Shown here: piece by piece, positions 1 through 62,014 of the stretch
Layout: every line of letters begins with the position of its first letter
How positions within the stretch are numbered: position 1 is the stretch's first letter
Sequence record: NC_041916.1
Direction: 5' to 3' (one strand)
Length of the DNA: 64,000 bases
Notes under the pieces: generated by a model
What the model saw: only the letters and a program-made list of their open reading frames with translations
Databases searched by the model: none
What the model was told of the DNA's origin: nothing
Position numbers and translations under genes: made by a program

Positions 1-3000
1 TGATGGTTGTTCCTGAAAGGGTGGTTGTACTACCTGCTATCGCTAGAGGGAGTTCCATCGTGTCGATAGAAACACCTTCGGCACCCGTGATGTTACTCAC
101 CCAGTTAATGACGTGAGTACCTTCAACGCCGTTGCCAGCATTAAACGTGTACGTCACCACTTCTTCAGTGTCACGAGTGAACTGGTAAGCGATTTGACCG
201 TTTTCATCAGTCATGGATTGAGGGAACGGAATACCGCCATCATCCCAAACCACACTCACGTTCGGCATAGGTTGCCCGAATTGGTCTTTCGTCAAGATAG
301 TAACATTGGCTGTTTCAGCAATGGTTGCTGTCTCAGGACCAGTGATCTCAATAGAGGTTACCACTGGAGGTGGAGCTGACCATGTAACAGTCAGAGTTAA
401 GTTCTCAACCGGACCGCTGCCGATGAAGTTGTAAACCACATCGCCGACTTCGTTAGCATTCAACGTAAACGTTGCGATACCATCTTGGTCAGAAGTGCGT
501 GCCGGCATGTTAGTACCACCGTCACTCCAAGCCACAGATTGACCAGCCATCGGATTACCGAATTGGTCTTTCGTTAGGATTTTAACTTCTAACGCTGTAC
601 CTGTTGTGCCCGCTGTTGGTGACTGAGTAAACTCCATGCTAGTGAAGATTGGATCAGGAAGACTCCAAGTAACTGTATGACCGATACGAGGAATGTTAGG
701 TTCCCAACCAAATTCGTAAAGCACGTCACCCGCTTCTGTAGCGTTGTAGTCGAACGACCACTTACCGCCCGGAGGTGAGCGGAACGCATCGCCCGGAGTA
801 CCGTTGATGAACGGACGGACTGATACGCCTTCGATTGGATTACCGTATTGGTCAAGCGTCATGGCTTCCAGTTTGACTGGTGTGCCAACTTCACCGGTGC
901 TTGGTTGTTCACCAACCCAAACGATGCTGGTGTATTCAGGTGGAACCAAGTGACCCCACTCAATATCAAACGATTCAGAAACCACAGCCCCAACATGAAC
1001 CGTGTAAGTCTTCTTCGTGTACTCAGCATAGCTGAGCGGGAACAAGAACTTACCTTCAGTGTCGATTGTACTTAATGTTTCACCGCCTTCAGTATCCACC
1101 AACTTAGCCACAACCACAGAGTTAGGAACTACGATTTGATCGTCAGCCGATAACAAGTGACCAGTTAGTTCAACTTCTTCACCTTCACTTGGATTTGCGC
1201 TGTGAGTATCAATAGCGATAGCTGTGTACTCTTTAAGCGGTTCATCCACCCAGCTGCTGTTCACTTGGGTACGAGCGTTCTCGGTGTAGATCATCACTTC
1301 AATAGAAGCGTCAGTCATACCCTCGATAGTGTACAGCCCGCGACCATGTTGGTTCGCATCAGGTGTGATAGTTAACGGTGTGAAGTTAGTGAAGTCAAAC
1401 GCCCCGATAACTGGGTTAGCAATCACCGCATCGTTCTGATCAGTAACCGTGATGTCAAACAACATCGCTTCACCGTTCACAGTAGGTTCGATGTTCAGTA
1501 CCTCTGTGATCGCCGAGCCTACCGGTTGATCAGTAAAGCTGACTTCGTAAACCCCAATGACCGTCGTTCCCACTTTAACTTCCAACATGACCGTTGAGTT
1601 TGGTTCTGTTGAGTTAAAGAGCAGCACCCCGTAACCTCGAGCATCCGTGTAAGTACCACGAATAGGTTGAGCACCACCTTGGATGTAAAGGTCTAGTGGA
1701 AGATCTACAACATCTGCACCAGCGTTCGTTGCTTTGAACGCCAAGAACACTGAACCGTCGTTAGCAGCACGTGTTGTAGAGAACGGAAGTTTTTCTACCG
1801 AGTCGTAAGCCGGAATAACCAACTCGACTTTAACAGTACCGTAAACTAGATCAGCGCCCGCACTCACGATCAATTCGTGATCACCTTCTTCGACCATATT
1901 AACATCAATACGGAACGAACCACCAATAGTTGGTGTGCTAACGTAATCAATCCCCGTTAGTTTGTCAGTGACTGTAACGACAACACCTTCAAGTAGATTA
2001 CCGTCTTTATCTTGGACGTTACCAGTAACCGCTACTGGTTTGTTAGGCAATGCTGTCGCAGGAACCACTACGTCACTAAGCACAACTTGTTTAGCTTCAC
2101 CATCCCAAGTAACAACGATGGATGTTTCTGATTCAACAATGTCGGTGAGCTTAGCTTTAATAGTGACAATCTCAGGGTCAGTAATAGAAACCACGTAAGC
2201 CTCTGAAACTTTACCTGTAGCGTAACCTAAGTGATCTGTAGTACCACCACTGATGTTTCCATACATCTCTTCAGAGTAGAAGTCTACCCACACGTTAGCA
2301 ACGCCTTGGTGAACTTGGTTCATTGCTCGAGCAACCAATGTTGCTTGCTCACCGTGTGCGACGGTTTCAGTGGTTGCTTTAGACATCTCAACCAACAGAT
2401 CGTCACGGAACGTTAGTGCAAACTCACCATAGTTCTCACCAGCATCACCTTCGTACTCTTGGTCTTCGAACCAGAATGTGTAGTCACCCGCCTCGTTCGG
2501 TACTACCGCTGAGTAAATTTCACCGTTAGGGCCGATGTGTGCGTAACCACCGTTGTAATCAACCCCGTCCATCTTACGATGTACAGCCACTTGAATACCG
2601 TAAGCTGGTTTGAATGGGTTACCGTCCGCATCTTGCGCTTGAGCCATGATAGGGAAGTAACCACCATCATTAACCATACCAACTGTCGGTGCGTCTGCGG
2701 TGAGCACGATCTTAGCTGGAGTAACTACATCGGCTTCGTCGACGACGACTAGGTCAAAGTAAACGCGGGAGTTAGATTGGCGGTGCCACATCACCATTGG
2801 GTGAGTACCCACCCCTAGTTTGAAGTCGCCGAACATTTCAGCGGTTTCAACGTTGTACACGGATGTTCCGTCAAGCACATAATCAGGAGAAGAAACAGAC
2901 ATCGCTTTGAAAGAAGGTAAGTGGTAAACATGCATGCCTTGAAGACTTGAGACGGGTGTACCAAGTTTATCTACAGCAGTGCATTTCACTACAGCTGATT

Positions 3001-5080
3001 TACCTACTTGTGTCTTCTCATTAATAGTGAAGTTAGCAAGTTCCATTACGCTCGGTCTTACATTACTACGAGTGTAATTCAGACGCAGTTGCTTGTCTTT
3101 GTACTTCGCCAAGTAGTAGACCGTTTCAAAGGCTTCAGTAAGTGGTGTATCCACCGTGACTTTAAGTTCAGCGAAACCGTATTCGTTGGTCATCACTGTC
3201 CCTAACTCTTCACCTTCGACTTCGTAGAAATCCGAACGGTAGAAGGTTACAGGTACGCCTGCCGCAGTTTCACCGTCGGCTGTAATAGCTGCAACACCAA
3301 TCAAGTCCTCAGTTCCTTCCGGTGTGGACTCGGTCATCCATGGTAGTGCTCTGAAACTTTCAAAGACTGGAACGCTGTCAATCCACGTGGTGTCATGATG
3401 TTCTGCTACCGCATTGGCGGCTAAGATCAATTCGTGATCACCGATAGGTAACGGACCGTAGTTGATGTTGAAACTGCCATCATCTCCAATTGCACCGTTC
3501 TCACCAAATTCTTGGTACTCCAATGTCGAGACGTTAAAGATACCGAGTTTCGTATCTTTAATAGGCGCACCGTTTTGGTCGTTCAGCACACCTGTGATCG
3601 TCATAGCGACATTATCTTTAGACTGGGTAGGGAAGACTACGTCTCTCAACGTCAAGCCCACAGGAACGCTTGCAGGCTTCCAGTAAACACCCGCCACTGC
3701 TTTAGACTCACCCACGATAGCGGTGATCTCTTCGTAGGTACGGTTTTCATCACCGCCCTGACTGATAGGAACTTCGAGGATGTGGTTGCCATCCACCGGT
3801 GTATTGGTGTAATGACGTTTACCAGAGCTCTCGATGTAATCTACCGCAGCAGCGGGTACCGCTTTACCATTAGTACCAGTAACAACGAAAGCAACAAAAC
3901 CATCCTGACCGGTAGGGACAGCATCGTTACCATATTCACACTTACTAATCGTTAACCCATCACGATATTCGAATTCGTGATCAAGTTTAGAAACCCCGTC
4001 AATCATCACGCCTTGACGTTGTGTCTTGGCTGTGTCTGATTGCGCGTTAATCACCAAAGAACCGTCTGGCAAAATAATGCCGAAAGACTTAGATGACCCG
4101 TTAATGGTGTTGTTGAATTTTAACTCGTTACGAACTTTAACCACTTCACCATCAGCGTTATAAGCAATAGCCTTAACGTAAGTATCTACCACGGTTGGGT
4201 AGACATGAGCATCGGGTGCAGTTAAACGAACCGTATCGATCACATCACTGACTTGGTCTTGCCACGTAACCGTAACGTCTTTACGACCGTTATCAGAGAA
4301 GAAGCACAAACGGTGTGAACCTTCACCTTGGTCATTCGGAGCCATGATGATACGACCATCAGGGTCTTGGTAAAAGTTAGAACTGATGATGGACAGTTTG
4401 TCTTTACTAAAGATGTCGAAGTTGTAAGGCTGAATAATCACTTCGCCATTTTGGTCTAACAAGTAACCACCCAGAACCGCACGACCACCCGGTTCCACTT
4501 CGTCAGTGTACATGAAGTCGGAAATCGCGTAAGTCAAAGGCTTGCTGTCGGTCGTCCATTCAACCGTGTGTGTTGCGATGGTTTTGCCAATGGTGGCATT
4601 AAAACGACGCGGACCTAATGCTAAGCTACCCGATTCCGTTGTAGGAGAAACTAGGAACTCAACGATACCGAAGCGGTCAGTGTTTACTGTAGCCGTCGGG
4701 TTCGGGTCTGAACTGTCGTCGTAGAACGTTACAGGTGCGTTTGGTACACCTTTACCATCAGGGTCAGTTACCGCAAAGGCGATCAATGCACTATGACCTT
4801 GGTGGGTTTCACTGGAGGAATAAGGGAGAACCGTTAAGTTCAAATCGTCTACGAAGAAGACTTCGTAAGAACCAACTTCTAACCCGTTGTACATGAATGT
4901 GATATCACATTCCCCTACCTTTTCAGAAGTCAGGTTAAATGACCACGTACCGTCTGGTTCGGTGATCACGGAGATGTCATCCCCACCATCACTTCGAACA
5001 CCGGTAATGGTTACTGGTTTTCCGGGCACGATAGGTCGACCCTGAGCATCCAGTATATTACCCTTAATAATCCCAATCAT
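1..5080 (-). CDS. Giant Ig-like (invasin/Big_1-like) repeat protein, probable tail fibre/adhesin; >=1693 aa, 3' end outside window
   Basis: Not in the ORF track because it has no stop in the window. ATG at 5080 after GGAG; my manual translation stays open to position 2 (MIGIIKGNILDAQGRPIVPG...MELPLAIAGSTTTLSGTTI). ~95-aa beta-rich repeats with DQxGxP and TDxxG motifs, similar to the C-terminal part of the upstream gene. Confidence 0.85.
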   Translation of the reverse strand, partial: MIGIIKGNILDAQGRPIVPGKPVTITGVRSDGGDDISVITEPDGTWSFNLTSEKVGECDITFMYNGLEVGSYEVFFVDDLNLTVLPYSSSETHQGHSALIAFAVTDPDGKGVPNAPVTFYDDSSDPNPTATVNTDRFGIVEFLVSPTTESGSLALGPRRFNATIGKTIATHTVEWTTDSKPLTYAISDFMYTDEVEPGGRAVLGGYLLDQNGEVIIQPYNFDIFSKDKLSIISSNFYQDPDGRIIMAPNDQGEGSHRLCFFSDNGRKDVTVTWQDQVSDVIDTVRLTAPDAHVYPTVVDTYVKAIAYNADGEVVKVRNELKFNNTINGSSKSFGIILPDGSLVINAQSDTAKTQRQGVMIDGVSKLDHEFEYRDGLTISKCEYGNDAVPTGQDGFVAFVVTGTNGKAVPAAAVDYIESSGKRHYTNTPVDGNHILEVPISQGGDENRTYEEITAIVGESKAVAGVYWKPASVPVGLTLRDVVFPTQSKDNVAMTITGVLNDQNGAPIKDTKLGIFNVSTLEYQEFGENGAIGDDGSFNINYGPLPIGDHELILAANAVAEHHDTTWIDSVPVFESFRALPWMTESTPEGTEDLIGVAAITADGETAAGVPVTFYRSDFYEVEGEELGTVMTNEYGFAELKVTVDTPLTEAFETVYYLAKYKDKQLRLNYTRSNVRPSVMELANFTINEKTQVGKSAVVKCTAVDKLGTPVSSLQGMHVYHLPSFKAMSVSSPDYVLDGTSVYNVETAEMFGDFKLGVGTHPMVMWHRQSNSRVYFDLVVVDEADVVTPAKIVLTADAPTVGMVNDGGYFPIMAQAQDADGNPFKPAYGIQVAVHRKMDGVDYNGGYAHIGPNGEIYSAVVPNEAGDYTFWFEDQEYEGDAGENYGEFALTFRDDLLVEMSKATTETVAHGEQATLVARAMNQVHQGVANVWVDFYSEEMYGNISGGTTDHLGYATGKVSEAYVVSITDPEIVTIKAKLTDIVESETSIVVTWDGEAKQVVLSDVVVPATALPNKPVAVTGNVQDKDGNLLEGVVVTVTDKLTGIDYVSTPTIGGSFRIDVNMVEEGDHELIVSAGADLVYGTVKVELVIPAYDSVEKLPFSTTRAANDGSVFLAFKATNAGADVVDLPLDLYIQGGAQPIRGTYTDARGYGVLLFNSTEPNSTVMLEVKVGTTVIGVYEVSFTDQPVGSAITEVLNIEPTVNGEAMLFDITVTDQNDAVIANPVIGAFDFTNFTPLTITPDANQHGRGLYTIEGMTDASIEVMIYTENARTQVNSSWVDEPLKEYTAIAIDTHSANPSEGEEVELTGHLLSADDQIVVPNSVVVAKLVDTEGGETLSTIDTEGKFLFPLSYAEYTKKTYTVHVGAVVSESFDIEWGHLVPPEYTSIVWVGEQPSTGEVGTPVKLEAMTLDQYGNPIEGVSVRPFINGTPGDAFRSPPGGKWSFDYNATEAGDVLYEFGWEPNIPRIGHTVTWSLPDPIFTSMEFTQSPTAGTTGTALEVKILTKDQFGNPMAGQSVAWSDGGTNMPARTSDQDGIATFTLNANEVGDVVYNFIGSGPVENLTLTVTWSAPPPVVTSIEITGPETATIAETANVTILTKDQFGQPMPNVSVVWDDGGIPFPQSMTDENGQIAYQFTRDTEEVVTYTFNAGNGVEGTHVINWVSNITGAEGVSIDTMELPLAIAGSTTTLSGTTI

Positions 5081-5146
5081 TATTAACTCCGTTAATTAGG
5101 TTAATTAAATTCTTTTGTTGACATCATCGTTGATTAAAGGATGAAA

Positions 5147-5168
5147 TAGGGGGAACGAATTCCCCCTA
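5147..5168 (-). terminator. UUCG-capped hairpin between the two Ig-repeat genes (weak terminator or processing signal)
   Basis: TAGGGGGAA-TTCG-TTCCCCCTA on the minus strand; only a short T run follows. Confidence 0.6.
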
Positions 5169-5206
5169 AGATTATGGACTGTCTTGTGACACTAAATCAC
5201 AGACCC

Positions 5207-8200
5207 CTAGATTATCGTCGCCGAACCTTTCATGGTTACGGTGTCATCGACGATACCCACCGGTGGTGAGTCTTCCGCAATATCAATACGGATTTCGAAC
5301 GGCTTCGGTAAGACCTCACCATTTTCAATCAGAATGTATTTGTTGGACGATTCATCCACGTTCACACGGTTAATGGTAATCAAGCCATCGATGACCTCGA
5401 CGCTCACTTCTTCGTAGTAAGAGCCAGTGTAAAGAATCATGTCTTTAACACCCGCTTGGTCCCAAGGACCGATTTCTACGTCAAAGAGTTTAGAACCACC
5501 GTCTACCGCACTTTGGTTGTAGTTGTAGTTATGACGATCGTACAGACCGACAGGCATGCTGCTGATCGGGTTACCACGTTGATCGATCACTTTACCACTG
5601 ACGTTGAACAGGTCGCCTAGGGCGATACCAGTTGCTTTAGTCAGCTCAGAGAACGACGTAGGTAACAAGATGCTGTCCGAAGACCAGTCTACGTTATGTT
5701 CATCACGTTTGCCAGCGTACACTGCAATAGCGGTTACACGATCACGGTCAACGATGTAAGGAACTCGGAATGTTGCCACGCCGTATTCATCTGTTGTCGC
5801 TTTCGCGTTCAACACACCATTGCCTTCGATAGAGATACCGAACGTACCACCAACAACTGGGTTACCCAAGTTATCTTTAAAGCCGTACGCCAAAGTAGCT
5901 TCTTTACCGAAGTGTAGATCAGAACTGCTGTAAGGTGCAGGATGCATCACCACGTTGTCGTGGTAGCGTACTGTGAGGTCACCCATGCCGATGTCATTGT
6001 CACCCGCTGGTGTCAACTTCCAAATAACTGTATCTTCTGCTCCGTGAGTCAGTGTTACTGTCCAGTTACCTTCAGTGTCAATGACACCTTTAATAACCGC
6101 ACCGCTTACTGAGTTCACTGCATCAAATTCAGTTTCCTCTGTAGGAGTAAATGGAGTGCCATCCAACTGATGCGCTGTACCCGTTACCACCATATCTGAG
6201 TTGGTTGTCCAGAAGTCACTTAGGTACTCTGATGGACGTAGGTCAGCCAACACCATAGGGCGAGCGTTCCAAACCACTTGTTCATTTTGATGGTGCATGT
6301 TCAATGCGAACACTACGTTGTTAGTCCCTTCTAGGAATGGACCGTAAGTTGCGTTCAACATACCGTCGCTGGTCAGGTTGTCTGACAGATCAACCAATTC
6401 CAGTTTCTCTTTCGAGAACACAACCGCCCAACCATTTTCAGCAGACTGGTTACCGTTTTGTGTTAACACGGTACCGTTGACGCTTAGTGGGTTAGGAAGT
6501 TCGGCTTGACGGACGATATTCAAAATACCGAAACTTGCCGGGTATTGTTCTGAATCGTTGACTTCCACCCAAGTAATGTAACCCTCGGACTTAGTATCAC
6601 CGAACACAGACTCGACATTATCGTTCTCAACAAACTCACCCCAACGTAGGGTAGATTCTGCGATACCGAATCGGTCAGTACGTACTTTGCTGATTGGTAC
6701 GTTAGGGAACGCATTCAGTCTAAACTCTACTGTGGCGTTAGGAACCCCATTGCCTGCTGCATCTTTAACGTAAGCCGCGATGAACACGTCTCCGCCTCGG
6801 ATAGCAGCGTCTTGAGAGTATTTAGCGTACGTGACTGCCGCACCACTGATGAACTTAACTGCTTTAGTAGCAATGTCTTGTCCATCTTTCACAAAGCTGT
6901 AGTGCCATTGACCGTCACTGCTTTGTTCCACTGGTATTGAAATCGTACCATCAGGCATCGCCCAAGCAGTACCGAACTCAACATCGTCAGTACGACGGTA
7001 ACTAACTTCAACCGGACCTTGGATACGCATACGTTGTTCACCTTCTTCAGGTGTCCAGCGCATAAGCTTACCATCGATCAACGTTTCCGCACCAGTGCCT
7101 ACTACCTCGGCAGTATCAGTTGGGATCATCCAACCAATCGCTGCGTATTGAACAGCCGGAGCTGACAACCAAGTGATCGTTCTAGTGAACTGAGAAGACT
7201 CAGTGTAGAACGCAATGTCGTGTTCCCCTTCTGATTGTGCTGCCAAATGTCCGTAGAACATCTCGCGGTCATTATCGTGCTTGGTTAACGTTACAGTTTG
7301 TAGTGTACGTTTGTTAAACGCTGACATAGCTGTAACCGGAACGTAACGATCGTTAAAGCCACCCATCGCCACTGCAACAACTGCATCTGAGCCCGCACCG
7401 ACTGTGTCAGTATGGTCTGACCAACGAACCATAACAGGCAAGCTGTAATCGTTCTTAGTCCAGTTGATGGTATGTTCTTCATTGAAGTCATTGGTGTAAC
7501 TAGCCAGTACTTTGATGTCGCCATCCCAGTAAACTGGTACCATTTGAACTTCGCCGAACACGGTGGTTTCTTTTGGATTCTCATCGTTGTCCGGAAGGAT
7601 GAATTCAGCAATACCGTTTTCATCAGTAAGAACAGTTTGTGACTGTAGACCCGCGTAACGCAAACTGATGGTTACAGGGATGTTAGGTACAGCGTTGCCG
7701 TACTCACCCATGGCAGCAATTGCTACAAAACCTTGTTCACGGTAAACCTGACGGGTGTTAGAGTAAGGTAGTACGCGAAGACCTACTACTGGTTCGGCTT
7801 CACCAACCCACTCGATGGTTTCTTCACGAATGTCATAACCTGTTGCGAACAACAGATGACGTGTTCCATCCCAAGAGCTTCCGCCTGCGATTGTTGCTGA
7901 CAGACTACCGTCACCGCCAAACTCGTAATAAGGAGGACGATGATTTACGTCAGACGCTGTACCACAGTCAACGTAATCGAACGAACCTTTATCAAAGATA
8001 AAGAAGTGTTCAGTCGGACTACTTTCACCTGCTTTCGCGCTCACGCCAGTGGTCAGTCTTACTTCACCACGACCATAACCGATTTGATCGATAAACGTCA
8101 CATCAATTACATCAGCCATTAGTGGATCAGTTGTACCAGCATCGTACCAAGTCACCGTTTGAGTTCTAGGCTGTGCCTCAACAAACACACTCGCCACACC

Positions 8201-11200
8201 GGAGGTGGTTTCGATAGTTTGACTTGTACCACTCAACACTGTTGGAGTGTCAATGACACCATTGGTTGGTGTGTCTGGGTTAAACGAAGCGACTACTGTA
8301 TTGGTTCCCGGTACCGCATCGTCACTACCAAGCACCAGTTCCATGATACCCCACTCATCGGTAATACCGTTCGTGTAGATTTCATTTTCTTCTGGGTTGA
8401 TAGCTTTCAACAGAGTCAGCCCTGCTACTGCTCGATCGTGTTCATCACGAACACCCCAAGCTACTCGCGCCGATTCCCCAGTAAAGCGGAAGGTTTGAGA
8501 GTAAGGCAGTTCTGTTACCGTACCATTGATGTATTCGATTTCAAACGTGGTTAAGATGCGTGAACCATCTTTGATGGTGTACACAACTGTACCCGCGCCC
8601 ACTACATCATGGATGTAGAAACCGATTGAACCGTCACTGTTAACCACGGTGTTACCAGTTGAACCGTCACTACCTTCCCATGTTACTGGGGTAGGAGTAG
8701 ATGGTTGGTAAACCGATTCGTCACCTGCAATACCTGTACCACGAATGTAGACCGTAGGAGCATCTACCGGAGTTAGGGCTTTTGTTGCGGTGTCGTCAGC
8801 CAGCTCAATGCGAGATAACACTTTATCGTAGACTCGCCATGTGATCGGCCACACTTTAGTATCACACTCAGAGAAGAACACTAGGTTGTGTTTACCTTCA
8901 GGAAGTGGATCCACCCAGAACGCTTGTTCACCGTTACCTAACACACCTGCCCAATCGTTAAGATCGTGTGCTGGAGGTAGGTTATCCGGGTCGTAAGGTT
9001 GTAGAGTCACCAAAGAGTAATCGTCACGGTTGTAACACATCAAACGACCAGTAGGGACTGGGTCGCCTTCTTCATTTGATACAACTGCACGCACTAACGG
9101 TGTAACACCGTTGTAAACAAACTGTGGTGCGTTAAATGAAGAGATCGTGTGAGCGATGTCTGTTTCTTCTGTCCAAATTAATTCCACCGTTGCTTCTTTC
9201 TCACCAGCAAAGCCAGCGATTTCACCAAAGCCTGTTTGGTAGTAAGGAACTGTGTATTCAAACTTACCGTACTTGTCAGTTATGCCATAACCCAAGTCTT
9301 TCTCTACCGGCAAGCGTTGGACGATGTCAATGCGTTGACCTACCATCACATCACCGTTCTCGTCTACCACGTACCAGCCAATGGTCATGGTCTCACCCAC
9401 CGGAATGCGGTAGTCTAGGTCGACGTTAGGTAATGGACGAATAAAGATCTCGCCTTCGAATTTAACTGTGAATGTACCGACTACACGAGTGTTAGATTTA
9501 AAGGTGTATTGGATATCGCCTTCTACATCGCTAGATGCTTTGAACGACCAACGACCATCACCCATGGAGTGTGCTTTCGCTACATTACCGTTACCGTACT
9601 CTACATCAAACTCGAATTCAGTGCCCGGAGCAAACAGTTTACCATGTTGGTCTACTGTCTCACCCTCCAACAACGCTGGAAGACCAAGTTTCGTTTCACG
9701 CGGCAAGCCGGCGTCAAACTTCAAGTTGTCTAAGCGTGCTGGTTCACCCATCCAAGTAATGGTGTGGGTTACCGGAGCCTTACCTTCTAGTTCAAACAAG
9801 AACGTAGTAACTTCCCAATCTTTAAACGGACCGACTTGAGTTTCAAAGCGACCGTCGATGCCTGCGTAAATCAGATCAGACTCACCGCTACCTAGTCGGG
9901 TAACCTTGATTGGGGTTTGACCTTCACTTACAAAGTCATTGCCTTCTGCATCCACCAATTTACCGGAAATAGCCACGGTAGTACCGGCAGGTGCTTCTGT
10001 TGGGTTTTCACTATCCAGTACAATGCGGTCAGCCACGATAACTTCTTTCTCCCACGTTGCCGTGCCGAAAGCGAAGTCGTTGTCTGTCCATACGACGATG
10101 TCGTAAGTATTGCCCGGTTCCATGTACGCGTGGTTCAACACATACGTACCTTTAGCGGCTGTCGTAGTAACGTTAGCCGGATTCCATTGAGGGCCGAAAC
10201 CAAACGTTGTAGTGACACCTTGTACCAGTTCACCGAATTGATCGTAGACACGACCTGTGACCGCCATTTGATCGGTACCCACAAAGGTCCAGTCAATTTG
10301 GTCTAAGGTGATGCGGTCGCCGTAAGACTCAGTTTCTACCCAAGTCAATACACGAACGTCGTCGGTACCGCCCGCCTTGATGTTCATGACTGCAACTTTC
10401 TCATCACCCGTATGGAAACGAGTCAACAAGAAATCACCATTTTCATCTGTGGTCTCCGCTCGGATAGTATCCAAGTCATCACCAACCATGGAGTAGAATG
10501 GGAAGTCACGTAGACGGTTTTGTTCGTCGTCTTCCAAGTAACCGTAAGCGCGTGCAGGTTTGTTCACACCCACTTTCGTAGGAGAGTAAGGATAGAACTC
10601 ACTAACGATGGTGTTTTCATTCTCGATGATCTCGATATCTTTTTCCAAGATATAAACTGGTGCTTTACCCGTTTCGAATGCAAACTCGATAGTTTCAGTT
10701 TCACCTACTGGTTTCTCGGACCATGTGTAGAAGCGGAATGAACCGTCAATCTTCACAGGAACTTTACGTGGGGACTTATCGTGGAATACACCACCACGAA
10801 CCATTAAGTTCGTTAAGCCGTCTTTCATTGGTTTACCGAACTGGTCGTAAACCACACCACTTACCGCAAAGACTTCATTCAGACCAATGCGACCCACTAC
10901 TTCACGATCAAGTTCAATCGACGTAGGTTCTGGTGTTTCTGTACTTGGGCCTTCCACGACATCAATAGAGACACCTGTGGTTGCCAATAACAGACGTTCG
11001 CCTTGAATGGATTCGTAAACCCAACGAACAAAGATCGTACGACCTTGTGGTTCTTGTACATCCAAGTAAAGCTTGTCTGCCCATTTCGATATCGCGTAAG
11101 AGTACACTTTACCTGAGCTGACTTCAATCTCAAAGTGAGTAGGTTTCATCGGACCTTTCTCACGCTGGCTATTGTACGACGGTTCTACTGCATAGTAGGT

Positions 11201-12667
11201 GTCTTCCAACCACTCGTCTTGAGATTCGTAACCTTTACCGAATTCGATTTGCTGACGACCATCGGCTTGGTTAACCGCTTTGAACGTAGGGTCGTTGTAA
11301 GCACTTTGATCGTAAGAATAACGAACGTCAAACTTGCTGCCGTCTTCGTTACCCGGTGCTTTCAGAATGAACGTCGTAGACTGACGCATGATCATTGGTT
11401 CGAACGTAGGAACCACATCACTTAGACGTAGGTTCAACTCAATGGTTTGTTCCACGCCGTAAGTCGTAGGACGGAAAGCAGGAGACAACTCATTGATACG
11501 AACGTAATCGGTAGCGTCCATAATGAAAGAACGATCTAAGTCGGTCAGGTAGTGTTTCAACTGGTACTGACCATTCACCCATGTAGGGTAAGAGTAAAGC
11601 TTAGGTGAGTAAGCCCCGTCGAAGTCTATCGCCAGCAATGAGTAAGAATCTCGGTACTGGTTCGGGTTACCCGGTTGAGCTTCGTAGATGTGCTCGTCTG
11701 GGTCCAAGTTGTACACTAAGGTCAAAGTACCACGTTGCCCCGGAGTCGAAGGCTTGTGTTCATTCAGACCGTACAAAATGACCTTCTGACCATCGATCGG
11801 TAACTCTTCTGATTTCGAACCGTCACTGTAGTGCACCAAGGCACGGAATGCCAAGTTTTGCAGCACCGTGTTAACTGGCACGTTCAGAGTTTTAGGGTCA
11901 CCAGAGTTCAGGAACCAAGGAGCGAGCAACTCCACTTTACGGATGTAACGTTTACCCACTTGGTGGTCACGTAGCATAGCCGTGTGCTGAACCGTTAGCG
12001 AACGCGCTTTCGGAATCATGTTACCGGTATGGTCGAACCACACCAAGGTCGCACGACTGCCATCTGGCAGTTCTTCCGCATTACGGTTCACGGAGAATGG
12101 TTGAGTAACCATGATCTCTTTGTTCGACAAATCGTGGTGTGCAGCTAACGTAGCAGGAATGCGGTTAGAGATCATTTCGTTGTTACTACCGTACACAACC
12201 GAAATGACTTTACCATTTTCCCCTACGGTGTTGCCTTCGTACAACAGAGCGTACGCGGCACCCGGTGCCATTACTTGACCATCTACCACGGCACGGTTAG
12301 GACGCACTGAGTAGTCGATACCAACGATCGCTTCTCCTTGGTAACCCGCAGGCAAACCAAAGATGGAGTTAAGTGGGTCGGAGTTACCATCACCACCGGT
12401 GTTAAAGATAGGTTCTAGGGTAGAACGTAAGTCCCCTTCCCAGTTAACGTGCGAAACGATGTACCATTGTTGAGCGACAGGGTCAACGACCATTTCTTTC
12501 TCTTTAGGTACACGGTAACGACTCTCCTCCCCCGGCTTCACCGTATCAGGGTTATAGACATCCCAAATATAGTGAAAACGTCCGGCTTCATTATCGTTAG
12601 GGAGCTGTGGACCAGCTCCCGGGATAACGGCGGATTGGGTAGGACTGTTTAAAGTTTTACTAAACAT
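5207..12667 (-). CDS. phiKZ gp26-like baseplate protein (N-terminal ~580 aa) fused to a ~1900-aa Ig-like repeat array
   Basis: Start moved to the ATG at 12667 (GAGG RBS; MFSKTLN). Lies next to gp27/gp28-like, sheath and tube genes. A P/T/E linker (GPSTETPEPT, ~10940) precedes repeated Ig-like domains. Confidence 0.75.
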   Translation of the reverse strand: MFSKTLNSPTQSAVIPGAGPQLPNDNEAGRFHYIWDVYNPDTVKPGEESRYRVPKEKEMVVDPVAQQWYIVSHVNWEGDLRSTLEPIFNTGGDGNSDPLNSIFGLPAGYQGEAIVGIDYSVRPNRAVVDGQVMAPGAAYALLYEGNTVGENGKVISVVYGSNNEMISNRIPATLAAHHDLSNKEIMVTQPFSVNRNAEELPDGSRATLVWFDHTGNMIPKARSLTVQHTAMLRDHQVGKRYIRKVELLAPWFLNSGDPKTLNVPVNTVLQNLAFRALVHYSDGSKSEELPIDGQKVILYGLNEHKPSTPGQRGTLTLVYNLDPDEHIYEAQPGNPNQYRDSYSLLAIDFDGAYSPKLYSYPTWVNGQYQLKHYLTDLDRSFIMDATDYVRINELSPAFRPTTYGVEQTIELNLRLSDVVPTFEPMIMRQSTTFILKAPGNEDGSKFDVRYSYDQSAYNDPTFKAVNQADGRQQIEFGKGYESQDEWLEDTYYAVEPSYNSQREKGPMKPTHFEIEVSSGKVYSYAISKWADKLYLDVQEPQGRTIFVRWVYESIQGERLLLATTGVSIDVVEGPSTETPEPTSIELDREVVGRIGLNEVFAVSGVVYDQFGKPMKDGLTNLMVRGGVFHDKSPRKVPVKIDGSFRFYTWSEKPVGETETIEFAFETGKAPVYILEKDIEIIENENTIVSEFYPYSPTKVGVNKPARAYGYLEDDEQNRLRDFPFYSMVGDDLDTIRAETTDENGDFLLTRFHTGDEKVAVMNIKAGGTDDVRVLTWVETESYGDRITLDQIDWTFVGTDQMAVTGRVYDQFGELVQGVTTTFGFGPQWNPANVTTTAAKGTYVLNHAYMEPGNTYDIVVWTDNDFAFGTATWEKEVIVADRIVLDSENPTEAPAGTTVAISGKLVDAEGNDFVSEGQTPIKVTRLGSGESDLIYAGIDGRFETQVGPFKDWEVTTFLFELEGKAPVTHTITWMGEPARLDNLKFDAGLPRETKLGLPALLEGETVDQHGKLFAPGTEFEFDVEYGNGNVAKAHSMGDGRWSFKASSDVEGDIQYTFKSNTRVVGTFTVKFEGEIFIRPLPNVDLDYRIPVGETMTIGWYVVDENGDVMVGQRIDIVQRLPVEKDLGYGITDKYGKFEYTVPYYQTGFGEIAGFAGEKEATVELIWTEETDIAHTISSFNAPQFVYNGVTPLVRAVVSNEEGDPVPTGRLMCYNRDDYSLVTLQPYDPDNLPPAHDLNDWAGVLGNGEQAFWVDPLPEGKHNLVFFSECDTKVWPITWRVYDKVLSRIELADDTATKALTPVDAPTVYIRGTGIAGDESVYQPSTPTPVTWEGSDGSTGNTVVNSDGSIGFYIHDVVGAGTVVYTIKDGSRILTTFEIEYINGTVTELPYSQTFRFTGESARVAWGVRDEHDRAVAGLTLLKAINPEENEIYTNGITDEWGIMELVLGSDDAVPGTNTVVASFNPDTPTNGVIDTPTVLSGTSQTIETTSGVASVFVEAQPRTQTVTWYDAGTTDPLMADVIDVTFIDQIGYGRGEVRLTTGVSAKAGESSPTEHFFIFDKGSFDYVDCGTASDVNHRPPYYEFGGDGSLSATIAGGSSWDGTRHLLFATGYDIREETIEWVGEAEPVVGLRVLPYSNTRQVYREQGFVAIAAMGEYGNAVPNIPVTISLRYAGLQSQTVLTDENGIAEFILPDNDENPKETTVFGEVQMVPVYWDGDIKVLASYTNDFNEEHTINWTKNDYSLPVMVRWSDHTDTVGAGSDAVVAVAMGGFNDRYVPVTAMSAFNKRTLQTVTLTKHDNDREMFYGHLAAQSEGEHDIAFYTESSQFTRTITWLSAPAVQYAAIGWMIPTDTAEVVGTGAETLIDGKLMRWTPEEGEQRMRIQGPVEVSYRRTDDVEFGTAWAMPDGTISIPVEQSSDGQWHYSFVKDGQDIATKAVKFISGAAVTYAKYSQDAAIRGGDVFIAAYVKDAAGNGVPNATVEFRLNAFPNVPISKVRTDRFGIAESTLRWGEFVENDNVESVFGDTKSEGYITWVEVNDSEQYPASFGILNIVRQAELPNPLSVNGTVLTQNGNQSAENGWAVVFSKEKLELVDLSDNLTSDGMLNATYGPFLEGTNNVVFALNMHHQNEQVVWNARPMVLADLRPSEYLSDFWTTNSDMVVTGTAHQLDGTPFTPTEETEFDAVNSVSGAVIKGVIDTEGNWTVTLTHGAEDTVIWKLTPAGDNDIGMGDLTVRYHDNVVMHPAPYSSSDLHFGKEATLAYGFKDNLGNPVVGGTFGISIEGNGVLNAKATTDEYGVATFRVPYIVDRDRVTAIAVYAGKRDEHNVDWSSDSILLPTSFSELTKATGIALGDLFNVSGKVIDQRGNPISSMPVGLYDRHNYNYNQSAVDGGSKLFDVEIGPWDQAGVKDMILYTGSYYEEVSVEVIDGLITINRVNVDESSNKYILIENGEVLPKPFEIRIDIAEDSPPVGIVDDTVTMKGSATII

Positions 12668-15242
12668 TTTTAACCTCAAAGTGTCCGTTAGTATTAATAC
12701 GAGATTCTAAGAAAACCTCATTAACCCGTTGTATGAAAATCAATTGCTTCGGTTCTACCACTGGTACGTATTGCTGTACATACGGGAAGACCGCAAAGTA
12801 ACGAACATCGTAACCCAATTGTACAGGGTCGTACTTAAGCAACCATTGAAAATCTGCTGTCTTACGCAATACATAGTCTTTGGAGTAAGATTCACCACTA
12901 GGTAGGTCATCCAGTTCCAATAGACCGAGTAAGATACGGTTCACTACCATGTTCATGAACGGACTGTACACACGGTACTTATCCATTAAAGAAGGGATGG
13001 CTTGTGGAGCAGGTTTCTTCGCAAACAGTGTTAGGTACTGACTCATTCGACGGTCACGGTCTCGTGCTTCTTCCCAACCATGTGAAGTATCGTACGGTAC
13101 CCAGTCTCGAAGAGGTAGATACCAATGTTTCACACCGTACGGTTTCCCGTTCAATGGGTTCAACACTTCACTCGGTGGATTGAGTTCCGCCACCGCTACC
13201 TTAGCCGGGTCCCAGACCTTACCATCGATCGTAGTGCGCGTTATACGGTCTTCTCGCAAGTTGTATTGACCATTATGACCAATCACACCACCAGTGACGT
13301 AACCTAACTCAGATTGTTCCAGAGGGGTCTTATCGTCGATTGGTGACCACTCACTACAATAAAGGACGAAATCGTTTCCTCCGTCTTTTAAGTATTGGTG
13401 GTTTAAGATATGAACGTCAGGGAAGTCCACCACGTAATCCACGTTCTCTATTAAAGAACGACGGTTCATGATGACCATGATGTTAGCTGGTGCAATGTCC
13501 ACCAACAACCCACCCTGAATCCATTCTCGTGTGACACTGAAAGATAATGAATTATCGATGTGGTTTAACGTGAACTCTTTGTACAACGTTTGGTCGTTGT
13601 AAACAATCAACCCCATGAACATCTTAGACGCCAATGTCCATGTCACGTTCCCCGTAGCACGATCAAAGAGATAGTCTTTCCCTTCTTCCGCCACCATTCG
13701 TTCTCCGGAGTACTCTCCTTCGGTGGTGACCGCCTGAACGTAAAAACGCGGCGTTGTGTTAGGGTCAACGTTCATCACCCCTCGACCGGCTTCTGCGTGA
13801 ATACGACGTCCCGGTTTACCCGGGAAGAATTCCACTAACCCAACATCACTGCTTGGTCTGACGAAATTCACACGACTTAAATATCGCATGCGAAGGAATA
13901 ACCCTTCCGAATCGTATTCAAACATGGTGAGGTCTTTACGACATGCAGGAGGGACTTCGAGTTCCGCTCCTGTTGAAGCGTCGTAAGACACAGGAGAAGC
14001 ACAGAGCACTTGCGTGGCTCGGTTGTACCCGATCGCCTTCATCGCCAAATCGTGGTTAATGTCCTTATAAGGGATGGTCAAGAACTCGTTTGTGGCGGAT
14101 TGTTCCAGATTGACTGCCAGCCATTCTTTCATGGTGGAGTTAATCCCGATCAATGCACCAACGATGTTCTCGTCATTCATGCGGTATAACCATCTCGCTC
14201 CATTAGACTCATAAGGAATCTCTTGAGCGTAGTTATTACGACGATACACCAACAACAACTGAGGACGGTCTTCGTTCACCATTTCTTGCATGTTGGTTTT
14301 ATCGTCCACCAAGGACGCGTTGACAGCGTAGTCGCGGTGAGTCAATTGACGGAAGTGACTCGCTTCGTTACGGTTAAGATACACCCCACGTTTCTTACGG
14401 TTCACTAAATAAAAGGCGACATCCGCCACATAGTGATACGTAAAGTCCCCGTCGACTTTAGGTGGGTGAACAATTAACTTACGAACGTTATCTCGCTTAG
14501 ACTGGAAGTTAGGCAAAGAGCCAACCTCATACATTTCTGTTTTCCAGACGCTAGGGTCATTGGTGATTTCGATGACCTCCGTTCCTAACAGTTGATCGTC
14601 CGCTGGAAACCCATCCCACAAATAACCATTCAAGTACACCGAGGTTAAACCCGGTAACTTGAGGTATTGTGCATAGATGATTTTCATGCGGTCTTTTTCT
14701 TCCGCTGAGTTATCGTTGTTAGAACTGAACCGCGGCCAGTCTAATTGTTGATTGTTGGTAAGTGGATTGTAAACTTCGGTTTGTATCGTGTAACAGTGAA
14801 CATAACGAGGTTCTTTCCAGCTCTGTTTGAATGCTCGCAACTTTTGTATCGCTAACAATTGTTGTCCGTCGTAAGTCGACATAATCCAACACTTGTCTCG
14901 AGGATATAAACGACCGTCATCTCCGTAGATGTCGACGATCATACCTCGTTCTTTACAAATCTTCGCAACGTTAATCCATTGGTCTACCGGATCCATGCGA
15001 GTGAACAATTCATGGAAGTTCCATGTCGAGCCATCAAAGCCAGACATGTTGTAAATCATGAAGTAGTCTCGTTCAATCGGAGTCTTGCGGTAACGTCCCA
15101 TGAACTGGAACGTGTTAATGTATCCCACGTCCGGTGATACCTGTGTCAGCATCAACTGAAACTGACGACCGGTACCGGGATTGGAATACATGTCCTTAAT
15201 GGCGTAACGCGCTAAAGGGGTGCGATAATTATCGACTAACAT
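12660..15242 (-). CDS. Virion structural (baseplate) protein, phiKZ gp27-like, 860 aa
   Basis: Long ORF with GAGGGG RBS; size and position match the gp26-gp27-gp28 / sheath-tube block. Confidence 0.7.
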   Translation of the reverse strand: MLVDNYRTPLARYAIKDMYSNPGTGRQFQLMLTQVSPDVGYINTFQFMGRYRKTPIERDYFMIYNMSGFDGSTWNFHELFTRMDPVDQWINVAKICKERGMIVDIYGDDGRLYPRDKCWIMSTYDGQQLLAIQKLRAFKQSWKEPRYVHCYTIQTEVYNPLTNNQQLDWPRFSSNNDNSAEEKDRMKIIYAQYLKLPGLTSVYLNGYLWDGFPADDQLLGTEVIEITNDPSVWKTEMYEVGSLPNFQSKRDNVRKLIVHPPKVDGDFTYHYVADVAFYLVNRKKRGVYLNRNEASHFRQLTHRDYAVNASLVDDKTNMQEMVNEDRPQLLLVYRRNNYAQEIPYESNGARWLYRMNDENIVGALIGINSTMKEWLAVNLEQSATNEFLTIPYKDINHDLAMKAIGYNRATQVLCASPVSYDASTGAELEVPPACRKDLTMFEYDSEGLFLRMRYLSRVNFVRPSSDVGLVEFFPGKPGRRIHAEAGRGVMNVDPNTTPRFYVQAVTTEGEYSGERMVAEEGKDYLFDRATGNVTWTLASKMFMGLIVYNDQTLYKEFTLNHIDNSLSFSVTREWIQGGLLVDIAPANIMVIMNRRSLIENVDYVVDFPDVHILNHQYLKDGGNDFVLYCSEWSPIDDKTPLEQSELGYVTGGVIGHNGQYNLREDRITRTTIDGKVWDPAKVAVAELNPPSEVLNPLNGKPYGVKHWYLPLRDWVPYDTSHGWEEARDRDRRMSQYLTLFAKKPAPQAIPSLMDKYRVYSPFMNMVVNRILLGLLELDDLPSGESYSKDYVLRKTADFQWLLKYDPVQLGYDVRYFAVFPYVQQYVPVVEPKQLIFIQRVNEVFLESRINTNGHFEVKNV

Positions 15243-15273
15243 AAGTTCCCCTCATAAGGAAAGTATTAAGGAA

Positions 15274-16152: not shown

Positions 16153-16243
16153 GATAAACTCCGTATTGAATCCTATGTAGAAACTTACTTTCTACGTTTC
16201 AGTTATAAGACAGTATTTCCTGTCATACGATTGATGGGAAGTG

Positions 16244-16263
16244 AGTTTTTTGATCAAAAAACT
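16244..16263. promoter_or_regulatory. Perfect 20-bp palindrome in the divergent baseplate/sheath intergenic region
   Basis: AGTTTTTTGATCAAAAAACT read directly; function unknown. Confidence 0.45.
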
Positions 16264-18435: not shown

Positions 18436-18440
18436 TCTAG

Positions 18441-61548: not shown

Positions 61549-61974
61549 TTATTCCGGTTGCTTAGCGCATTGACCGGTTTCTATAAAACGTTTTAATTCT
61601 AAGTTGTCTTGTGTCAACCTTTCGATATCTCTGATGAGAACGGATCGCTCTTTTAACGTGGCGATGTGTTCGTCCTGTATGGTCTCTAAGCGAGCTGTGA
61701 GTCCCCGGTTAATCGTCACGAATGACTTTAGGGGATTATCTTCTACTGCAAAGATTTGTTGGATAACCTCACTAGTCTCCTCCCATTCTTTCTTACCTAA
61801 CATCGCGTGGGTGTATTGTAAGCCTAAGCCGAATACTAGCCAAGTCACAATGGTTGCATAAAAAATGGTCCATCTCAATACCACTCGAATCTTTTCTTCG
61901 TATGTCTCTCCTTGAACCTTAGGAACCATGGATTCTATGAATCGGTCCGCCAGTTCTTTTAGAACTATAAACAT
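61549..61974 (-). CDS. Single-TM, coiled-coil protein (phiKZ gp156-like), ~141 aa
   Basis: Start moved to MFIVLK at 61974; TM segment WTIFYATIVTWLVFGLGL; C-terminal heptads. Confidence 0.65.
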   Translation of the reverse strand: MFIVLKELADRFIESMVPKVQGETYEEKIRVVLRWTIFYATIVTWLVFGLGLQYTHAMLGKKEWEETSEVIQQIFAVEDNPLKSFVTINRGLTARLETIQDEHIATLKERSVLIRDIERLTQDNLELKRFIETGQCAKQPE

Positions 61975-62014
61975 CGCTAACACACCTTATTGTTTTTATA
62001 AGTGGGAAACTATT

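Follow-up and report, generated by a model that had tools for sequence, protein, structure and literature searches.

Vibrio phage pTD1 is a phiKZ-like jumbo phage in which giant arrays of Ig-like domains are encoded beside the baseplate genes, raising the question of what such arrays do there. The stretch of DNA analyzed here (the window; 64,000 nucleotides of record NC_041916.1) is pTD1 sequence (100% identity), with position 1 at record position 175277. Two array proteins are encoded in it, both on the minus strand: gp161 (5207..12667; 2486 aa, from the open reading frame and the annotation) and gp160 (1..5080; 1726 aa, annotated as "putative invasin"), the last 33 aa of which lie past the window start. 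An earlier note, made from the sequence alone, took these for a two-gene system, but the array spans five consecutive genes, gp161 and gp160 being followed by gp159, gp158 and gp157 outside the window. Together, gp157-gp161 have approximately 70 Ig-like domains and occupy 9.9% of the pTD1 genome. The reading tentatively favored here, at a little under an even chance, is that the arrays are segmented adhesive filaments, multivalent and anchored at the baseplate, that add to the canonical fibers. If so, pTD1 devotes approximately a tenth of its genome to long sticky tail-tip filaments.

When seeded with six triads, HMMs specific to each of the domain types A, B and C parsed the proteins stably, and HMMs trained on Aphrodite1 phage alone reproduced 63 of 64 pTD1 type calls. 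Residue autocorrelation peaks at approximately 290-310 aa in all five array proteins, in agreement with the 290-aa periodicity expected by the earlier note, and also at approximately 100 and 190-200 aa. Similarity by domain lag has its maximum at lag 3, and gp160 aligns with gp161 over 560-1170 aa (approximately 21% identity) in several registers, offset by approximately 293, 315 and 553 aa. The next domain after B is C in 20 of 21 cases and the next after A is B in 14 of 15 (pTD1 transitions: AB 14, BC 20, CA 12, CB 9, CC 3, AA 1, BB 1, BA 0, AC 0). None of 5000 within-protein label shuffles reached the observed counts, and the non-random order also holds with seed-only HMMs on proteins left out of seeding. 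The three types hold up as genuine, and they are arranged far from randomly. To this extent the A-B-C triad described previously stands, but the repeating unit is (A)BC, with ABC triads mixed with contiguous BC dyads, and not a strict triad. Because triads are mixed with dyads, C-B-C-C and A-A-B-B, 21 of the 35 domains in the window (18 in gp161 and 17 in gp160) lie within complete triads. The size given before (>3500 aa, approximately 35 domains) agrees with the approximately 1,850 aa of array in gp161 and the 1,726 aa of gp160, as does the conservation of order despite divergence with a triad-to-triad identity of 19-24%.

In the typed-HMM parse (all positions on the minus strand), gp161 consists of a gp26-like baseplate domain, 18 Ig-like domains in the order C-B-C-C, ABC, ABC, BC, ABC, ABC (four triads, one dyad and the proximal C-B-C-C) and a 53-aa tail. 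The non-repeat N-terminal domain (aa 1-585; 10913..12667) is followed by C-B-C-C (aa 586-980; 9728..10912), so that the boundary between N-terminal domain and array, at 10912/10913, is within 20 nt of the array end proposed earlier (10930). Next are triad 1 (aa 992-1285; 8813..9694), triad 2 (aa 1300-1628; 7784..8770), a BC dyad that abuts the preceding C without an A domain (aa 1634-1840; 7148..7768), triad 3 (aa 1856-2141; 6245..7102), triad 4 (aa 2153-2433; 5369..6211) and the C-terminal tail (5210..5368), for which no family matches were found. The 17 domains of gp160 have the order ABC, ABC, BC, ABC, BC, A-A-B-B: triad 1 (aa 2-281; 4238..5077), triad 2 (aa 294-574; 3359..4201), dyad 1 (aa 580-787; 2720..3343), triad 3 (aa 803-1093; 1802..2674), dyad 2 (aa 1099-1284; 1229..1786) and the distal A-A-B-B (aa 1297-1668; 77..1192), which has the strongest Big_1 and MG4 Pfam matches. 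A 58-aa tail follows.

The domains are predicted to fold as all-beta, Ig-like sandwiches, as had been anticipated, in AF2 models of triad 1 of gp160 (pLDDT 80, pTM 0.73) and of a hexad of six domains (pLDDT 87, pTM 0.70). Foldseek matches include invasin, SbsC, MG-domain, titin and T5 pb4 arrays. The triad model superposes on independently predicted paralogues with TM-scores of 0.61-0.73 (rmsd 3.8-9.6 Å), whereas the hexad model reaches just 0.27-0.55 (rmsd 15-30 Å), the inter-domain geometry in each case coming from AlphaFold models alone with shallow alignments of 6-7 sequences. Geometry thus appears reproducible between models within triads and not between them, suggesting that the triad is a structural module; that the triad superposes and the hexad does not agrees with the "segmented" fiber of the earlier note.

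The description "invasin-like" is appropriate for stalk-type domains only. Type B is weakly Big_1-like and type A is weakly similar to Invasin_D3 or CarboxypepD_reg, but type C has no Pfam match. Relatedness to the Big_1 stalks of invasin/intimin/FdeC-type inverse autotransporters is also seen in a Foldseek match to invasin (1cwv) and a weak match to FdeC (4e9l) in a PDB-sequence profile search. In cells, the closest relatives are giant surface proteins of bacteria described as "Ig-like domain-containing", and the triad profile matches proteins of Orbus, Serratia and Symbiopectobacterium. These bacterial adhesins parse as homotypic arrays of Big_1-like B domains (B-B-B-B), whereas the phage proteins are heterotypic. 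Unlike invasin/intimin-type proteins, the array proteins have no beta-barrel/LysM translocator or lectin-like C-terminal tip in Pfam and family searches, and no signal peptide was seen at their N-termini by eye. Similarity to macroglobulin (MG) proteins of the alpha-2-macroglobulin/C3 family includes Pfam MG4 and bMG3 matches in gp160 and gp159 and Foldseek matches to the MG arrays of C3, A2M and TEP1, but TM-scores are just 0.25-0.33 and the thioester, bait-region and receptor-binding domains are unmatched in the Pfam search. As in titin-type Ig/FN3 super-repeats, different types occur in a fixed order despite low identity, and domains of one type seldom adjoin (5 of 60 contiguous pairs in pTD1). 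This is an analogy and not membership, as homology is limited to the general fold while pattern, organism and presumed function differ.

The arrays can be connected to the baseplate through gp161, as its genomic context had suggested. Residues 39-557 span nearly the full length of phiKZ gp26 (PDB 9xqd chain PHIKZ026, E-value: 2.4e-59, target 22-539 of 552; N-terminus to phrog_3430: 1.3e-145), while the full protein has its own PHROG (phrog_27497). Judged by sequence, the N-terminal part of gp161 is homologous to phiKZ gp26, which belongs to the outer periphery of the baseplate. The phiKZ protein stops at 552 aa, whereas gp161 adds approximately 1,900 aa of Ig-like domains. The other four proteins, gp157-gp160, are stand-alone arrays built from types A, B and C. 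In phiKZ, gp26 is the cross-linker of the outer-periphery "star lobe" (five copies per lobe, six lobes), and gp27, also in the outer star lobe, is its core scaffold (PMC13250141). The pTD1 gene has the same neighbors as phiKZ gp26: gp162 (12660..15242, minus strand; 860 aa), which shares 8 nt with the start of gp161 and is the gp27 homologue (PDB 9xqd PHIKZ027, E-value: 6e-47; 11pb_C, E-value: 1e-58), and gp163 (15274..16152, minus strand; 292 aa), which is in the phiKZ gp28 position by synteny and phrog_3227 and adjoins the sheath and tube genes. The gp26 partners are likewise present in pTD1, as homologues of gp130 and gp139 (fiber-docking), the gp131-like fiber bases and phiKZ gp157 (61928..63346, plus strand; tblastn E-value: 7e-34, 26% identity over 452 aa), the last being a protein of the brace ring in the outer baseplate periphery (PMC13250141).

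The C-terminus of phiKZ gp26 makes internal cross-links, inserting into the phiKZ gp157 ring and touching gp130/gp139 (PMC13250141), and therefore the gp161 extension could be structural and not exposed. The Ig chains would then serve as non-adhesive ropes or struts, bracing the very wide baseplate periphery and its fibers or keeping them spaced and extending the cross-linking role of gp26, whose termini reach neighboring components. The triad is semi-rigid by prediction, and the proximal order and domain number (C-B-C-C, ABC, ABC) are kept across genera; C-B-C-C is also found in VP4B (88-93% identity to pTD1), Aphrodite1 and PDCC-1. This is nonetheless unlikely: phiKZ makes the same star lobe from a gp26 without an Ig array, and domain number and gene partition vary freely (five array genes in pTD1 and three in Aphrodite1; gp158 of 1156 aa in pTD1 and 975 aa in VP4B). 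Distal domains are, moreover, only 30-70% identical, compared to >90% for structural neighbors, which is unusual for lattice components.

Conservation drops outwards from the gp161 anchor, a fiber-like pattern. Between pTD1 and VP4B, identity is 92% for the gp161 N-terminal domain, 88-93% for the first seven Ig domains and 45-76% for the distal ones; it is 67% for gp160, 60% for gp159, 42% for gp157 and 30% for gp158, and 91-98% for neighboring core genes. The dN/dS of array genes (0.15-0.21, versus 0.04-0.065 for core genes) indicates that the arrays are functional but three to four times less constrained. With dN/dS below 1 and dS near saturation, this faster evolution may be relaxed constraint and not host adaptation, which weakens the case for the favored filaments. 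Could they be primary receptor-binding fibers, the main host-range determinants of the clade? They evolve fastest in the structural region compared, between phages of V. parahaemolyticus and V. harveyi, and the conserved N-terminus with a variable C-terminus is typical of fibers. However, none of the five array proteins has a recognizable distal receptor-binding domain in Pfam and family searches, which also counts against the favored reading, and pTD1 keeps the canonical phiKZ fiber set, including three gp131-like fiber proteins and the docking proteins gp130 and gp139. The arrays are therefore accessory and not the sole fibers, and a primary receptor-binding role is very improbable.

An identifiable virion anchor is found in gp161 only, and the array genes are separate cistrons, each flanked by terminator-like hairpins. 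In the 126-nt gp161/gp160 gap, a GC-rich hairpin and T-rich tract (5150..5166, minus strand; same position in VP4B) precede the Shine-Dalgarno sequence and ATG of gp160. Such an arrangement could suit proteins that work within the infected cell or at its surface, such as released adhesins or a lysis matrix, but this is hardly credible for gp157-gp160, given the lack of a visible signal peptide, the domain grammar shared with the anchored gp161 and the location of the genes, which are on the strand of gp161-gp163 and have the terminase gene on one side and the baseplate, sheath and tube genes on the other. The literature searched held no virion proteomics or imaging for any phage of the pTD1 clade, and it is by pure inference that gp157-gp160 would be in the virion. 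A candidate docking module is the N-terminal A domain (4826..5080, minus strand, in gp160), a specialized "head" common to gp157-gp160. These heads score 92 mutually and 36-39 against internal A domains, and are the best-conserved domains of gp160 (83% to VP4B, 73% to phiKT1028), gp159 and gp157.

Ig-like sandwiches are found on other phage structural proteins (T4 Hoc, T5 pb4 and Big_2/FN3 tail domains), where they are thought to be weak, multivalent carbohydrate binders; T5 pb4 and Hoc-type proteins are among the structural matches of the pTD1 models. That class has 1-10 domains, in contrast to the approximately 70 in pTD1, which are of three types in an ordered grammar and have a baseplate-periphery anchor. 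The (A)BC order was found only in approximately 240-kb vibrio jumbo phages, and the fusion of a gp26-like domain to an Ig array only in Gorgonvirinae-type vibrio phages. In the Hoc "bacteriophage adherence to mucus" (BAM) model, adhesion is provided by Ig-like arrays, and the pTD1 arrays, on the baseplate or as a Hoc-like head or tail decoration, might attach to animal mucus or to chitin instead of the host, holding the phage where vibrios live. [quoted passage not shown] The steep divergence seen when phages infecting different Vibrio hosts are compared suits contact with the host surface at least equally, and the sole identifiable anchor is the baseplate, no capsid-binding module having been detected; environmental tethering is thus rather unlikely.

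The adhesive filaments favored here would operate as follows. Seated in the star lobes by its gp26-like part, gp161 would be present in approximately 30 copies per virion (extrapolated by analogy with phiKZ), each projecting a filament of approximately 70 nm (extrapolated from 18 Ig-like domains at approximately 4 nm each) made of semi-rigid BC or ABC segments and flexible links. Alternation of types would keep neighboring domains dissimilar, and the obligate B-C pairing would result from a co-evolved rigid interface. Using their conserved N-terminal A domain, gp157-gp160 would dock to the same structure or to each other, leaving their faster-evolving distal parts exposed. Jointly, the five proteins would make up a fringe of adhesive filaments, multivalent and of low affinity, that enlarges the capture radius and allows reversible first contact with Vibrio surface polysaccharides, after which the canonical gp131-like fibers would engage the cell. 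At the DNA level there is no repeat, the only echo being between the two distal B domains of gp160, which are also the most similar pair.

The window is 100% identical to Vibrio phage pTD1 (AP017972/NC_041916; Gorgonvirinae, Tidunavirus), which has a genome of 239,276 bp; record position 175277 is window position 1. gp161 (window 5207-12667, minus strand) encodes a 2486-aa protein annotated as a virion structural protein; the ORF listing gives it a TTG start at 12679, four codons upstream of the annotated ATG. gp160 (window 1-5080, minus strand) encodes a 1726-aa protein annotated as a putative invasin, the last 33 aa of which lie past the window edge. Beyond that edge are gp159 (1630 aa), gp158 (1156 aa) and gp157 (756 aa), followed by the large terminase gene. 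The array was described in the earlier note as a two-gene system, but it comprises five genes instead (gp161-gp157), which occupy 23,666 nt or 9.9% of the pTD1 genome. All of the genes that make up this finding are encoded on the minus strand.

In the 126-nt gap between gp161 and gp160 (window 5081-5206, minus strand), a GC-rich hairpin that ends in a T-rich stretch (5150-5166) precedes a Shine-Dalgarno sequence and the gp160 ATG. The same series of elements is found in each gap that follows an Ig-array gene (in L001, the pTD1 array locus, at 15058-15176, 10111-10164, 6550-6639 and 4192-4278). VP4B and Aphrodite1 have hairpins at equivalent positions, with different stem sequences. Because each gap has a hairpin, a Shine-Dalgarno sequence and an ATG, each array gene looks like its own cistron, and a single giant gene split by stop codons or joined by frameshifting was ruled out. 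The hairpins could perhaps act in stepwise attenuation from gp161 to gp157. A scan for sigma-70 promoters and terminators gave results that were overall at or below chance, and only the intergenic hairpin stands out, by where it lies. The Aphrodite1 genes gp040 and gp041 are spaced by 10 nt, without a hairpin. Several array gaps (L001 4192-4278 and 6550-6639; locus L002 5385-5472; Aphrodite1 locus L004 23222-23309) contain a short motif, …TCGTATAG… or …GTATGAC…, downstream of the hairpin and ahead of the following start codon. The late promoters of phiKZ have a TATG-like core, and the shared gap motif may be a lead to putative phage RNA polymerase promoters.

The ~290-aa periodicity predicted by the earlier note was recovered: residue autocorrelation peaks at ~290-310 aa in every array protein (with further peaks at ~100 and 190-200 aa), and domains within one protein resemble each other most at lag 3 (mean similarity 34.6, compared to ~27-30.5 at lags 1, 4 and 7). 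The control protein, gp162, has no autocorrelation peaks. Alignment of gp160 with gp161 is possible in several registers of 560-1170 aa (~21% identity; offsets of ~293, 315 and 553 aa). A single profile iterated from one domain identifies ~65 domains of ~97 aa across the five array proteins and none in gp162 or gp163. As one profile finds them all, these domains are distantly homologous.

Regular expressions modelled loosely on the A, B and C patterns of the earlier note matched only a handful of sites. Because these motifs are too degenerate, hidden Markov models (HMMs) of the three types were used instead, seeded with six obvious gp160 and gp161 triads and iterated over the proteins of pTD1, VP4B, Aphrodite1 and PDCC-1. 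They superseded spectral clustering and k-means on the raw pairwise scores, which were noisy and produced one catch-all cluster; identities from global pairwise comparison, whether inside a type or across types, were left unused, as the short aligned stretches made them uninformative. In the best-scoring, non-overlapping parse, gp161 consists of a non-repeat region (residues 1-585) followed by C B C C, ABC, ABC, BC, ABC, ABC and a 53-aa tail. gp160 consists of ABC, ABC, BC, ABC, BC, A A B B and a 58-aa tail (window 1-76 and beyond) that is rich in Thr, Ser and Gly, has short internal repeats and shows no family match in a Pfam scan. gp159 is parsed as A B, a gap, C B, a gap, B C, BC, ABC, ABC and C; gp158 as ABC, BC, ABC, ABC and A; and gp157 as A, a gap, BC, BC, C and B.

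The order of these domains is far from random. The contiguous transitions in pTD1 are AB (14), BC (20), CA (12), CB (9), CC (3), AA (1) and BB (1), with no BA or AC, and same-type neighbours make up only five of the 60 contiguous pairs. None of 5000 label shuffles within proteins matched the observed AB, BC or forward-order counts. Although the type HMMs were iterated on the very proteins that they classify, two controls agree with them: seed-only HMMs give the same order on proteins that contributed no seeds, and HMMs trained on Aphrodite1 domains alone reproduce 63 of the 64 pTD1 type calls across genera. The ordered A-B-C super-repeat is therefore real and solidly established, but the strict triad first proposed is not the unit. 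The unit is (A)BC, with 21 of the 35 window domains in full triads; because the BC dyads abut the preceding C, no hidden A domain is present there. The seven window triads align over their full length with 19-24% identity and six invariant columns. No tandem or long direct repeats were found at the DNA level, which rules out recent tandem duplication and indicates that the (A)BC pattern is old and maintained at the protein level.

Whole-protein Pfam scans identify Big_1, CarboxypepD_reg, MG4, bMG3 and Invasin_D3. When scanned domain by domain, all matches fall under the curated cut-offs. For Big_1, the whole-protein scores are 60.6 and 107.3 bits (cut-off 34.9) and those of single domains are 19-29 bits. 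In the single-domain scans, type B shows a weak resemblance to Big_1, as does the gp160 N-terminal A domain to Invasin_D3, CarboxypepD_reg or Big_1, and type C has no Pfam match. The MG4 matches (45.7 and 51.4 bits) exceed the cut-off of 24.7 bits, but, unlike in alpha-2-macroglobulin proteins, no thioester or A2M domains were found in the Pfam scans.

The Ig-like folds anticipated for these domains are solidly predicted. AlphaFold2 models of the first gp160 triad (pLDDT 80, pTM 0.73; input alignment of the seven window triads) and of six domains (ABC-ABC; pLDDT 87, pTM 0.70) are all-beta, with the triad forming three beta sandwiches of six to eight strands each. The Foldseek matches in the PDB are Ig-like arrays: the S-layer protein SbsC, invasin (1cwv), the MG arrays of C3, A2M and TEP1, titin and the T5 pb4 fibre. 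Their TM-scores are only 0.2-0.33, so it is the fold that is in common and not the arrangement. No PDB sequence matched the gp160 sequence, and the triad profile found only two weak adhesin matches there. Among predicted viral structures, the triad superimposes on separately modelled paralogues, namely pTD1 gp158 (TM 0.73, rmsd 3.8 Å, 25% identity), VP4B gp051 (TM 0.68) and Aphrodite1 gp040 (TM 0.61). The six-domain model reaches a TM of 0.27-0.55 at most against predicted viral structures (rmsd 15-30 Å). In these models, which derive from AlphaFold with shallow alignments, the internal geometry of the triad is reproducible and the joints between units are not. This would be expected of a segmented filament and is consistent with the segmented structural module suggested in the earlier note.

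In an exhaustive profile search with the triad, 1227 proteins were found at E ≤ 1e-3, including 53 at E ≤ 1e-30; a word-based protein search with gp160 found four close relatives only. The top non-phage matches are bacterial Ig-like domain-containing proteins of 3,700-6,900 aa (Orbus, Serratia and Symbiopectobacterium), in which the same type HMMs detect long homotypic B arrays with non-repeat ends. The (A)BC grammar is confined to ~240-kb jumbo phages of vibrios and Photobacterium and to short metagenomic contigs. Besides pTD1, its carriers are VP4B, Aphrodite1, PDCC-1, phiKT1028, phiKT1019, 2 TSL-2019 and a 244-kb ENA contig, and the protein families are PHROGs 27497, 27570, 22550 and 35019. 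pTD1 encodes a sixth Ig-array protein, gp020 (putative hemagglutinin/hemolysin-related protein, 1423 aa; pTD1 record 15182-19453, minus strand, outside the window), which has ~11 more Ig-like domains. These match A, B and C about equally weakly and so do not follow the (A)BC grammar.

The array proteins were initially called invasin-like, a description that is appropriate for their stalk-type domains only. Invasin and intimin have an N-terminal beta-barrel translocator (with or without LysM), whereas the N-terminus of gp161 is gp26-like and that of gp160 is an A domain; no beta-barrel translocator was detected by Pfam in either protein. No C-terminal lectin-like tip was found either: the 53-aa and 58-aa tails match no family, and gp157-gp159 end inside a domain. 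With both translocator and tip domain missing, membership in the invasin/intimin family was rejected. The adhesive Ig-like decorations of other phages (Hoc/BAM and T5 pb4) may work in a similar way, and the super-repeats of titin have a comparable ordered heterotypic pattern, as an analogy only. Database entries name the array proteins hypothetical, Big-1 domain-containing or putative invasin and nothing more, and no paper describing the arrays, their domain grammar or the fusion to gp26 turned up in literature searches.

The N-terminal region of gp161 links the array to the baseplate. Residues 39-557 match phiKZ gp26 (PDB 9xqd, chain 22-539 of 552; E-value: 2.4e-59), and gp161 aligns with phrog_3430, a family of ~554-aa proteins, over profile positions 8-551 of 554 (E-value: 1.3e-145). 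On every point that could be tested (sequence, synteny and partner genes), this domain belongs to the phiKZ gp26 family. gp162 matches phiKZ gp27 (PHIKZ027), and the order tube, sheath, gp163, gp162 and gp161 mirrors that of phiKZ gp30, gp29, gp28, gp27 and gp26. The placement of the array in a baseplate gene block is thus well founded, and both the gp26 fusion and the partner genes are solid. According to the 2026 phiKZ atlas (PMC13250141), the six star lobes at the outer periphery of the baseplate have gp27 as their core scaffold and are cross-linked by gp26, with five gp26 copies per lobe; the star lobes carry the twelve fibres. Unlike gp161, phiKZ gp26 has no Ig extension. The gp26-Ig fusion was found in this vibrio phage clade only, with a locus search using the gp26-like part returning pTD1, VP4B and Aphrodite1. 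gp162 (window 12660-15242, minus strand) is more similar to an 864-aa virion structural protein in PDB 11pb and 36za (E-value: 1e-58) than to phiKZ gp27, which suggests that a baseplate structure closer to pTD1 is available from another jumbo phage.

pTD1 also encodes the canonical phiKZ set of fibre and star-lobe proteins, outside the window (pTD1 record 42.5-59.8 kb; L007 and L008). tblastn matches were obtained for phiKZ gp130, gp139, gp157, gp131, gp133 and gp135. The gp157-like brace protein is encoded within the window (61928-63346, plus strand). gp131-like fibre-base (N-terminal) domains are found in three proteins (gp045, gp046 and gp047), and gp048, gp053 and gp055 are gp130-like, gp139-like and gp129-like, respectively. 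As the phiKZ-type fibre set is present, the Ig arrays are an addition to the canonical fibre apparatus. It is improbable that they serve as the primary receptor-binding fibres, given that the gp131-like set is intact and a tip domain is absent.

When pTD1, a phage of V. parahaemolyticus, is compared with VP4B, a phage of V. harveyi, amino acid identity follows a solid gradient. It is high for the terminase (96%), tube (98%), sheath (93%), gp163 (93%), gp162 (91%) and the gp161 N-terminal domain (92%), then falls through the gp161 Ig part (73%), gp160 (67%), gp159 (60%), gp157 (42%) and gp158 (30%, with large indels). Along gp161, identity is 88-93% in the first seven Ig domains and drops to 45-76% in the distal domains. 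A conserved root with a variable tip is the usual signature of a phage fibre. In gp160, gp159 and gp157, the N-terminal A domain is the best conserved; the four N-terminal A domains have a mean mutual score of 92, compared to 36-39 for internal A domains. dN/dS is 0.15-0.21 for the arrays and 0.04-0.065 for core genes (a rough guide, as dS is near saturation), indicating that the array genes are under purifying selection and functional. The partition of the array into genes is fluid: in Aphrodite1, the gp26-like protein (1588 aa) has just ten Ig domains and the next two proteins measure 3529 and 2548 aa, giving a total length similar to the 2486, 1726, 1630, 1156 and 756 aa of pTD1 (Aphrodite1 L004 61-23221 compared with pTD1 L001 4279-27944). 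If the Ig chains acted purely as structural bracing, this would be hard to reconcile with a domain number that varies freely and with fast distal divergence, and we consider such a role quite unlikely. It is highly improbable that gp157-gp160 are free-standing non-virion proteins, given where their genes lie and a grammar in common with the anchored gp161.

The proposed model, to which we give slightly less than an even chance, is that the arrays form baseplate-anchored, multivalent capture filaments that precede the gp131-like fibres. gp161 would enter the star lobes through its gp26-like part, in ~30 copies if the phiKZ stoichiometry holds, and each copy would project an 18-domain filament of ~70 nm (at ~4 nm per Ig-like domain); both values are extrapolations from phiKZ. 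gp160-gp157 would attach, through their special N-terminal A domains, either to the same structure or to each other. Distal domains, left exposed, may bind surface polysaccharides weakly and multivalently and thereby enlarge the radius of capture ahead of engagement by the gp131-like fibres. Like domains would be kept apart by the heterotypic order, in which the obligate B-C pair probably forms a co-evolved, rigid brick with A as an optional spacer. A more elaborate version is tentative: gp161 covalently anchored to the star lobe and gp160-gp157 docked by their N-terminal A domains could together build an all-Ig hierarchical appendage, in which rigid B-C bricks and optional A spacers or hinges form a segmented fringe of ~70 domains for long-range capture or for tethering to mucus or chitin. 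Such an appendage, occupying ~10% of the genome, would represent a new class of phage adhesion organelle. That the arrays function simply as an environmental mucus or chitin tether is rather unlikely; the related phages phiKT1019 and phiKT1028 last a week in the shrimp gut and decay in water, which is circumstantial evidence for this role (PMC10587174).

Jumbo phages have much more elaborate tails than T4-like phages, and in phiKZ the role of the outer star of the baseplate is still under study (PMC13250141). In pTD1, the gp26 cross-linker appears to have become the base of a long Ig filament, and four more Ig-array genes follow, which suggests that the star lobes serve as a platform for additional appendages. 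A strict (A)BC grammar at ~20-25% identity, absent from the homotypic bacterial relatives, provides a natural test set for multi-domain filaments and material for studying how they avoid misfolding and set their stiffness. If the capture filaments bind glycans on host or animal surfaces, they would help to explain how phages that are candidates for aquaculture adsorb, which hosts they infect and why they persist in the gut. The annotations putative invasin and virion structural protein need to be used with caution, the former resting on stalk-type domains alone.

Two other regions of the window encode large proteins with informative matches. The 2324-aa protein encoded at 42760-49734 (plus strand) belongs to PHROG 3201 (tail fiber protein) and has an endolysin/lysozyme-like domain at residues 1975-2187; it may be a phiKZ gp181-type tail-associated lysin rather than a fibre. 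At 36770-42738 (minus strand), two adjacent ORFs of 1451 and 536 aa have matches to split RNA polymerase subunits of the beta type, which are typical of phiKZ-like phages.
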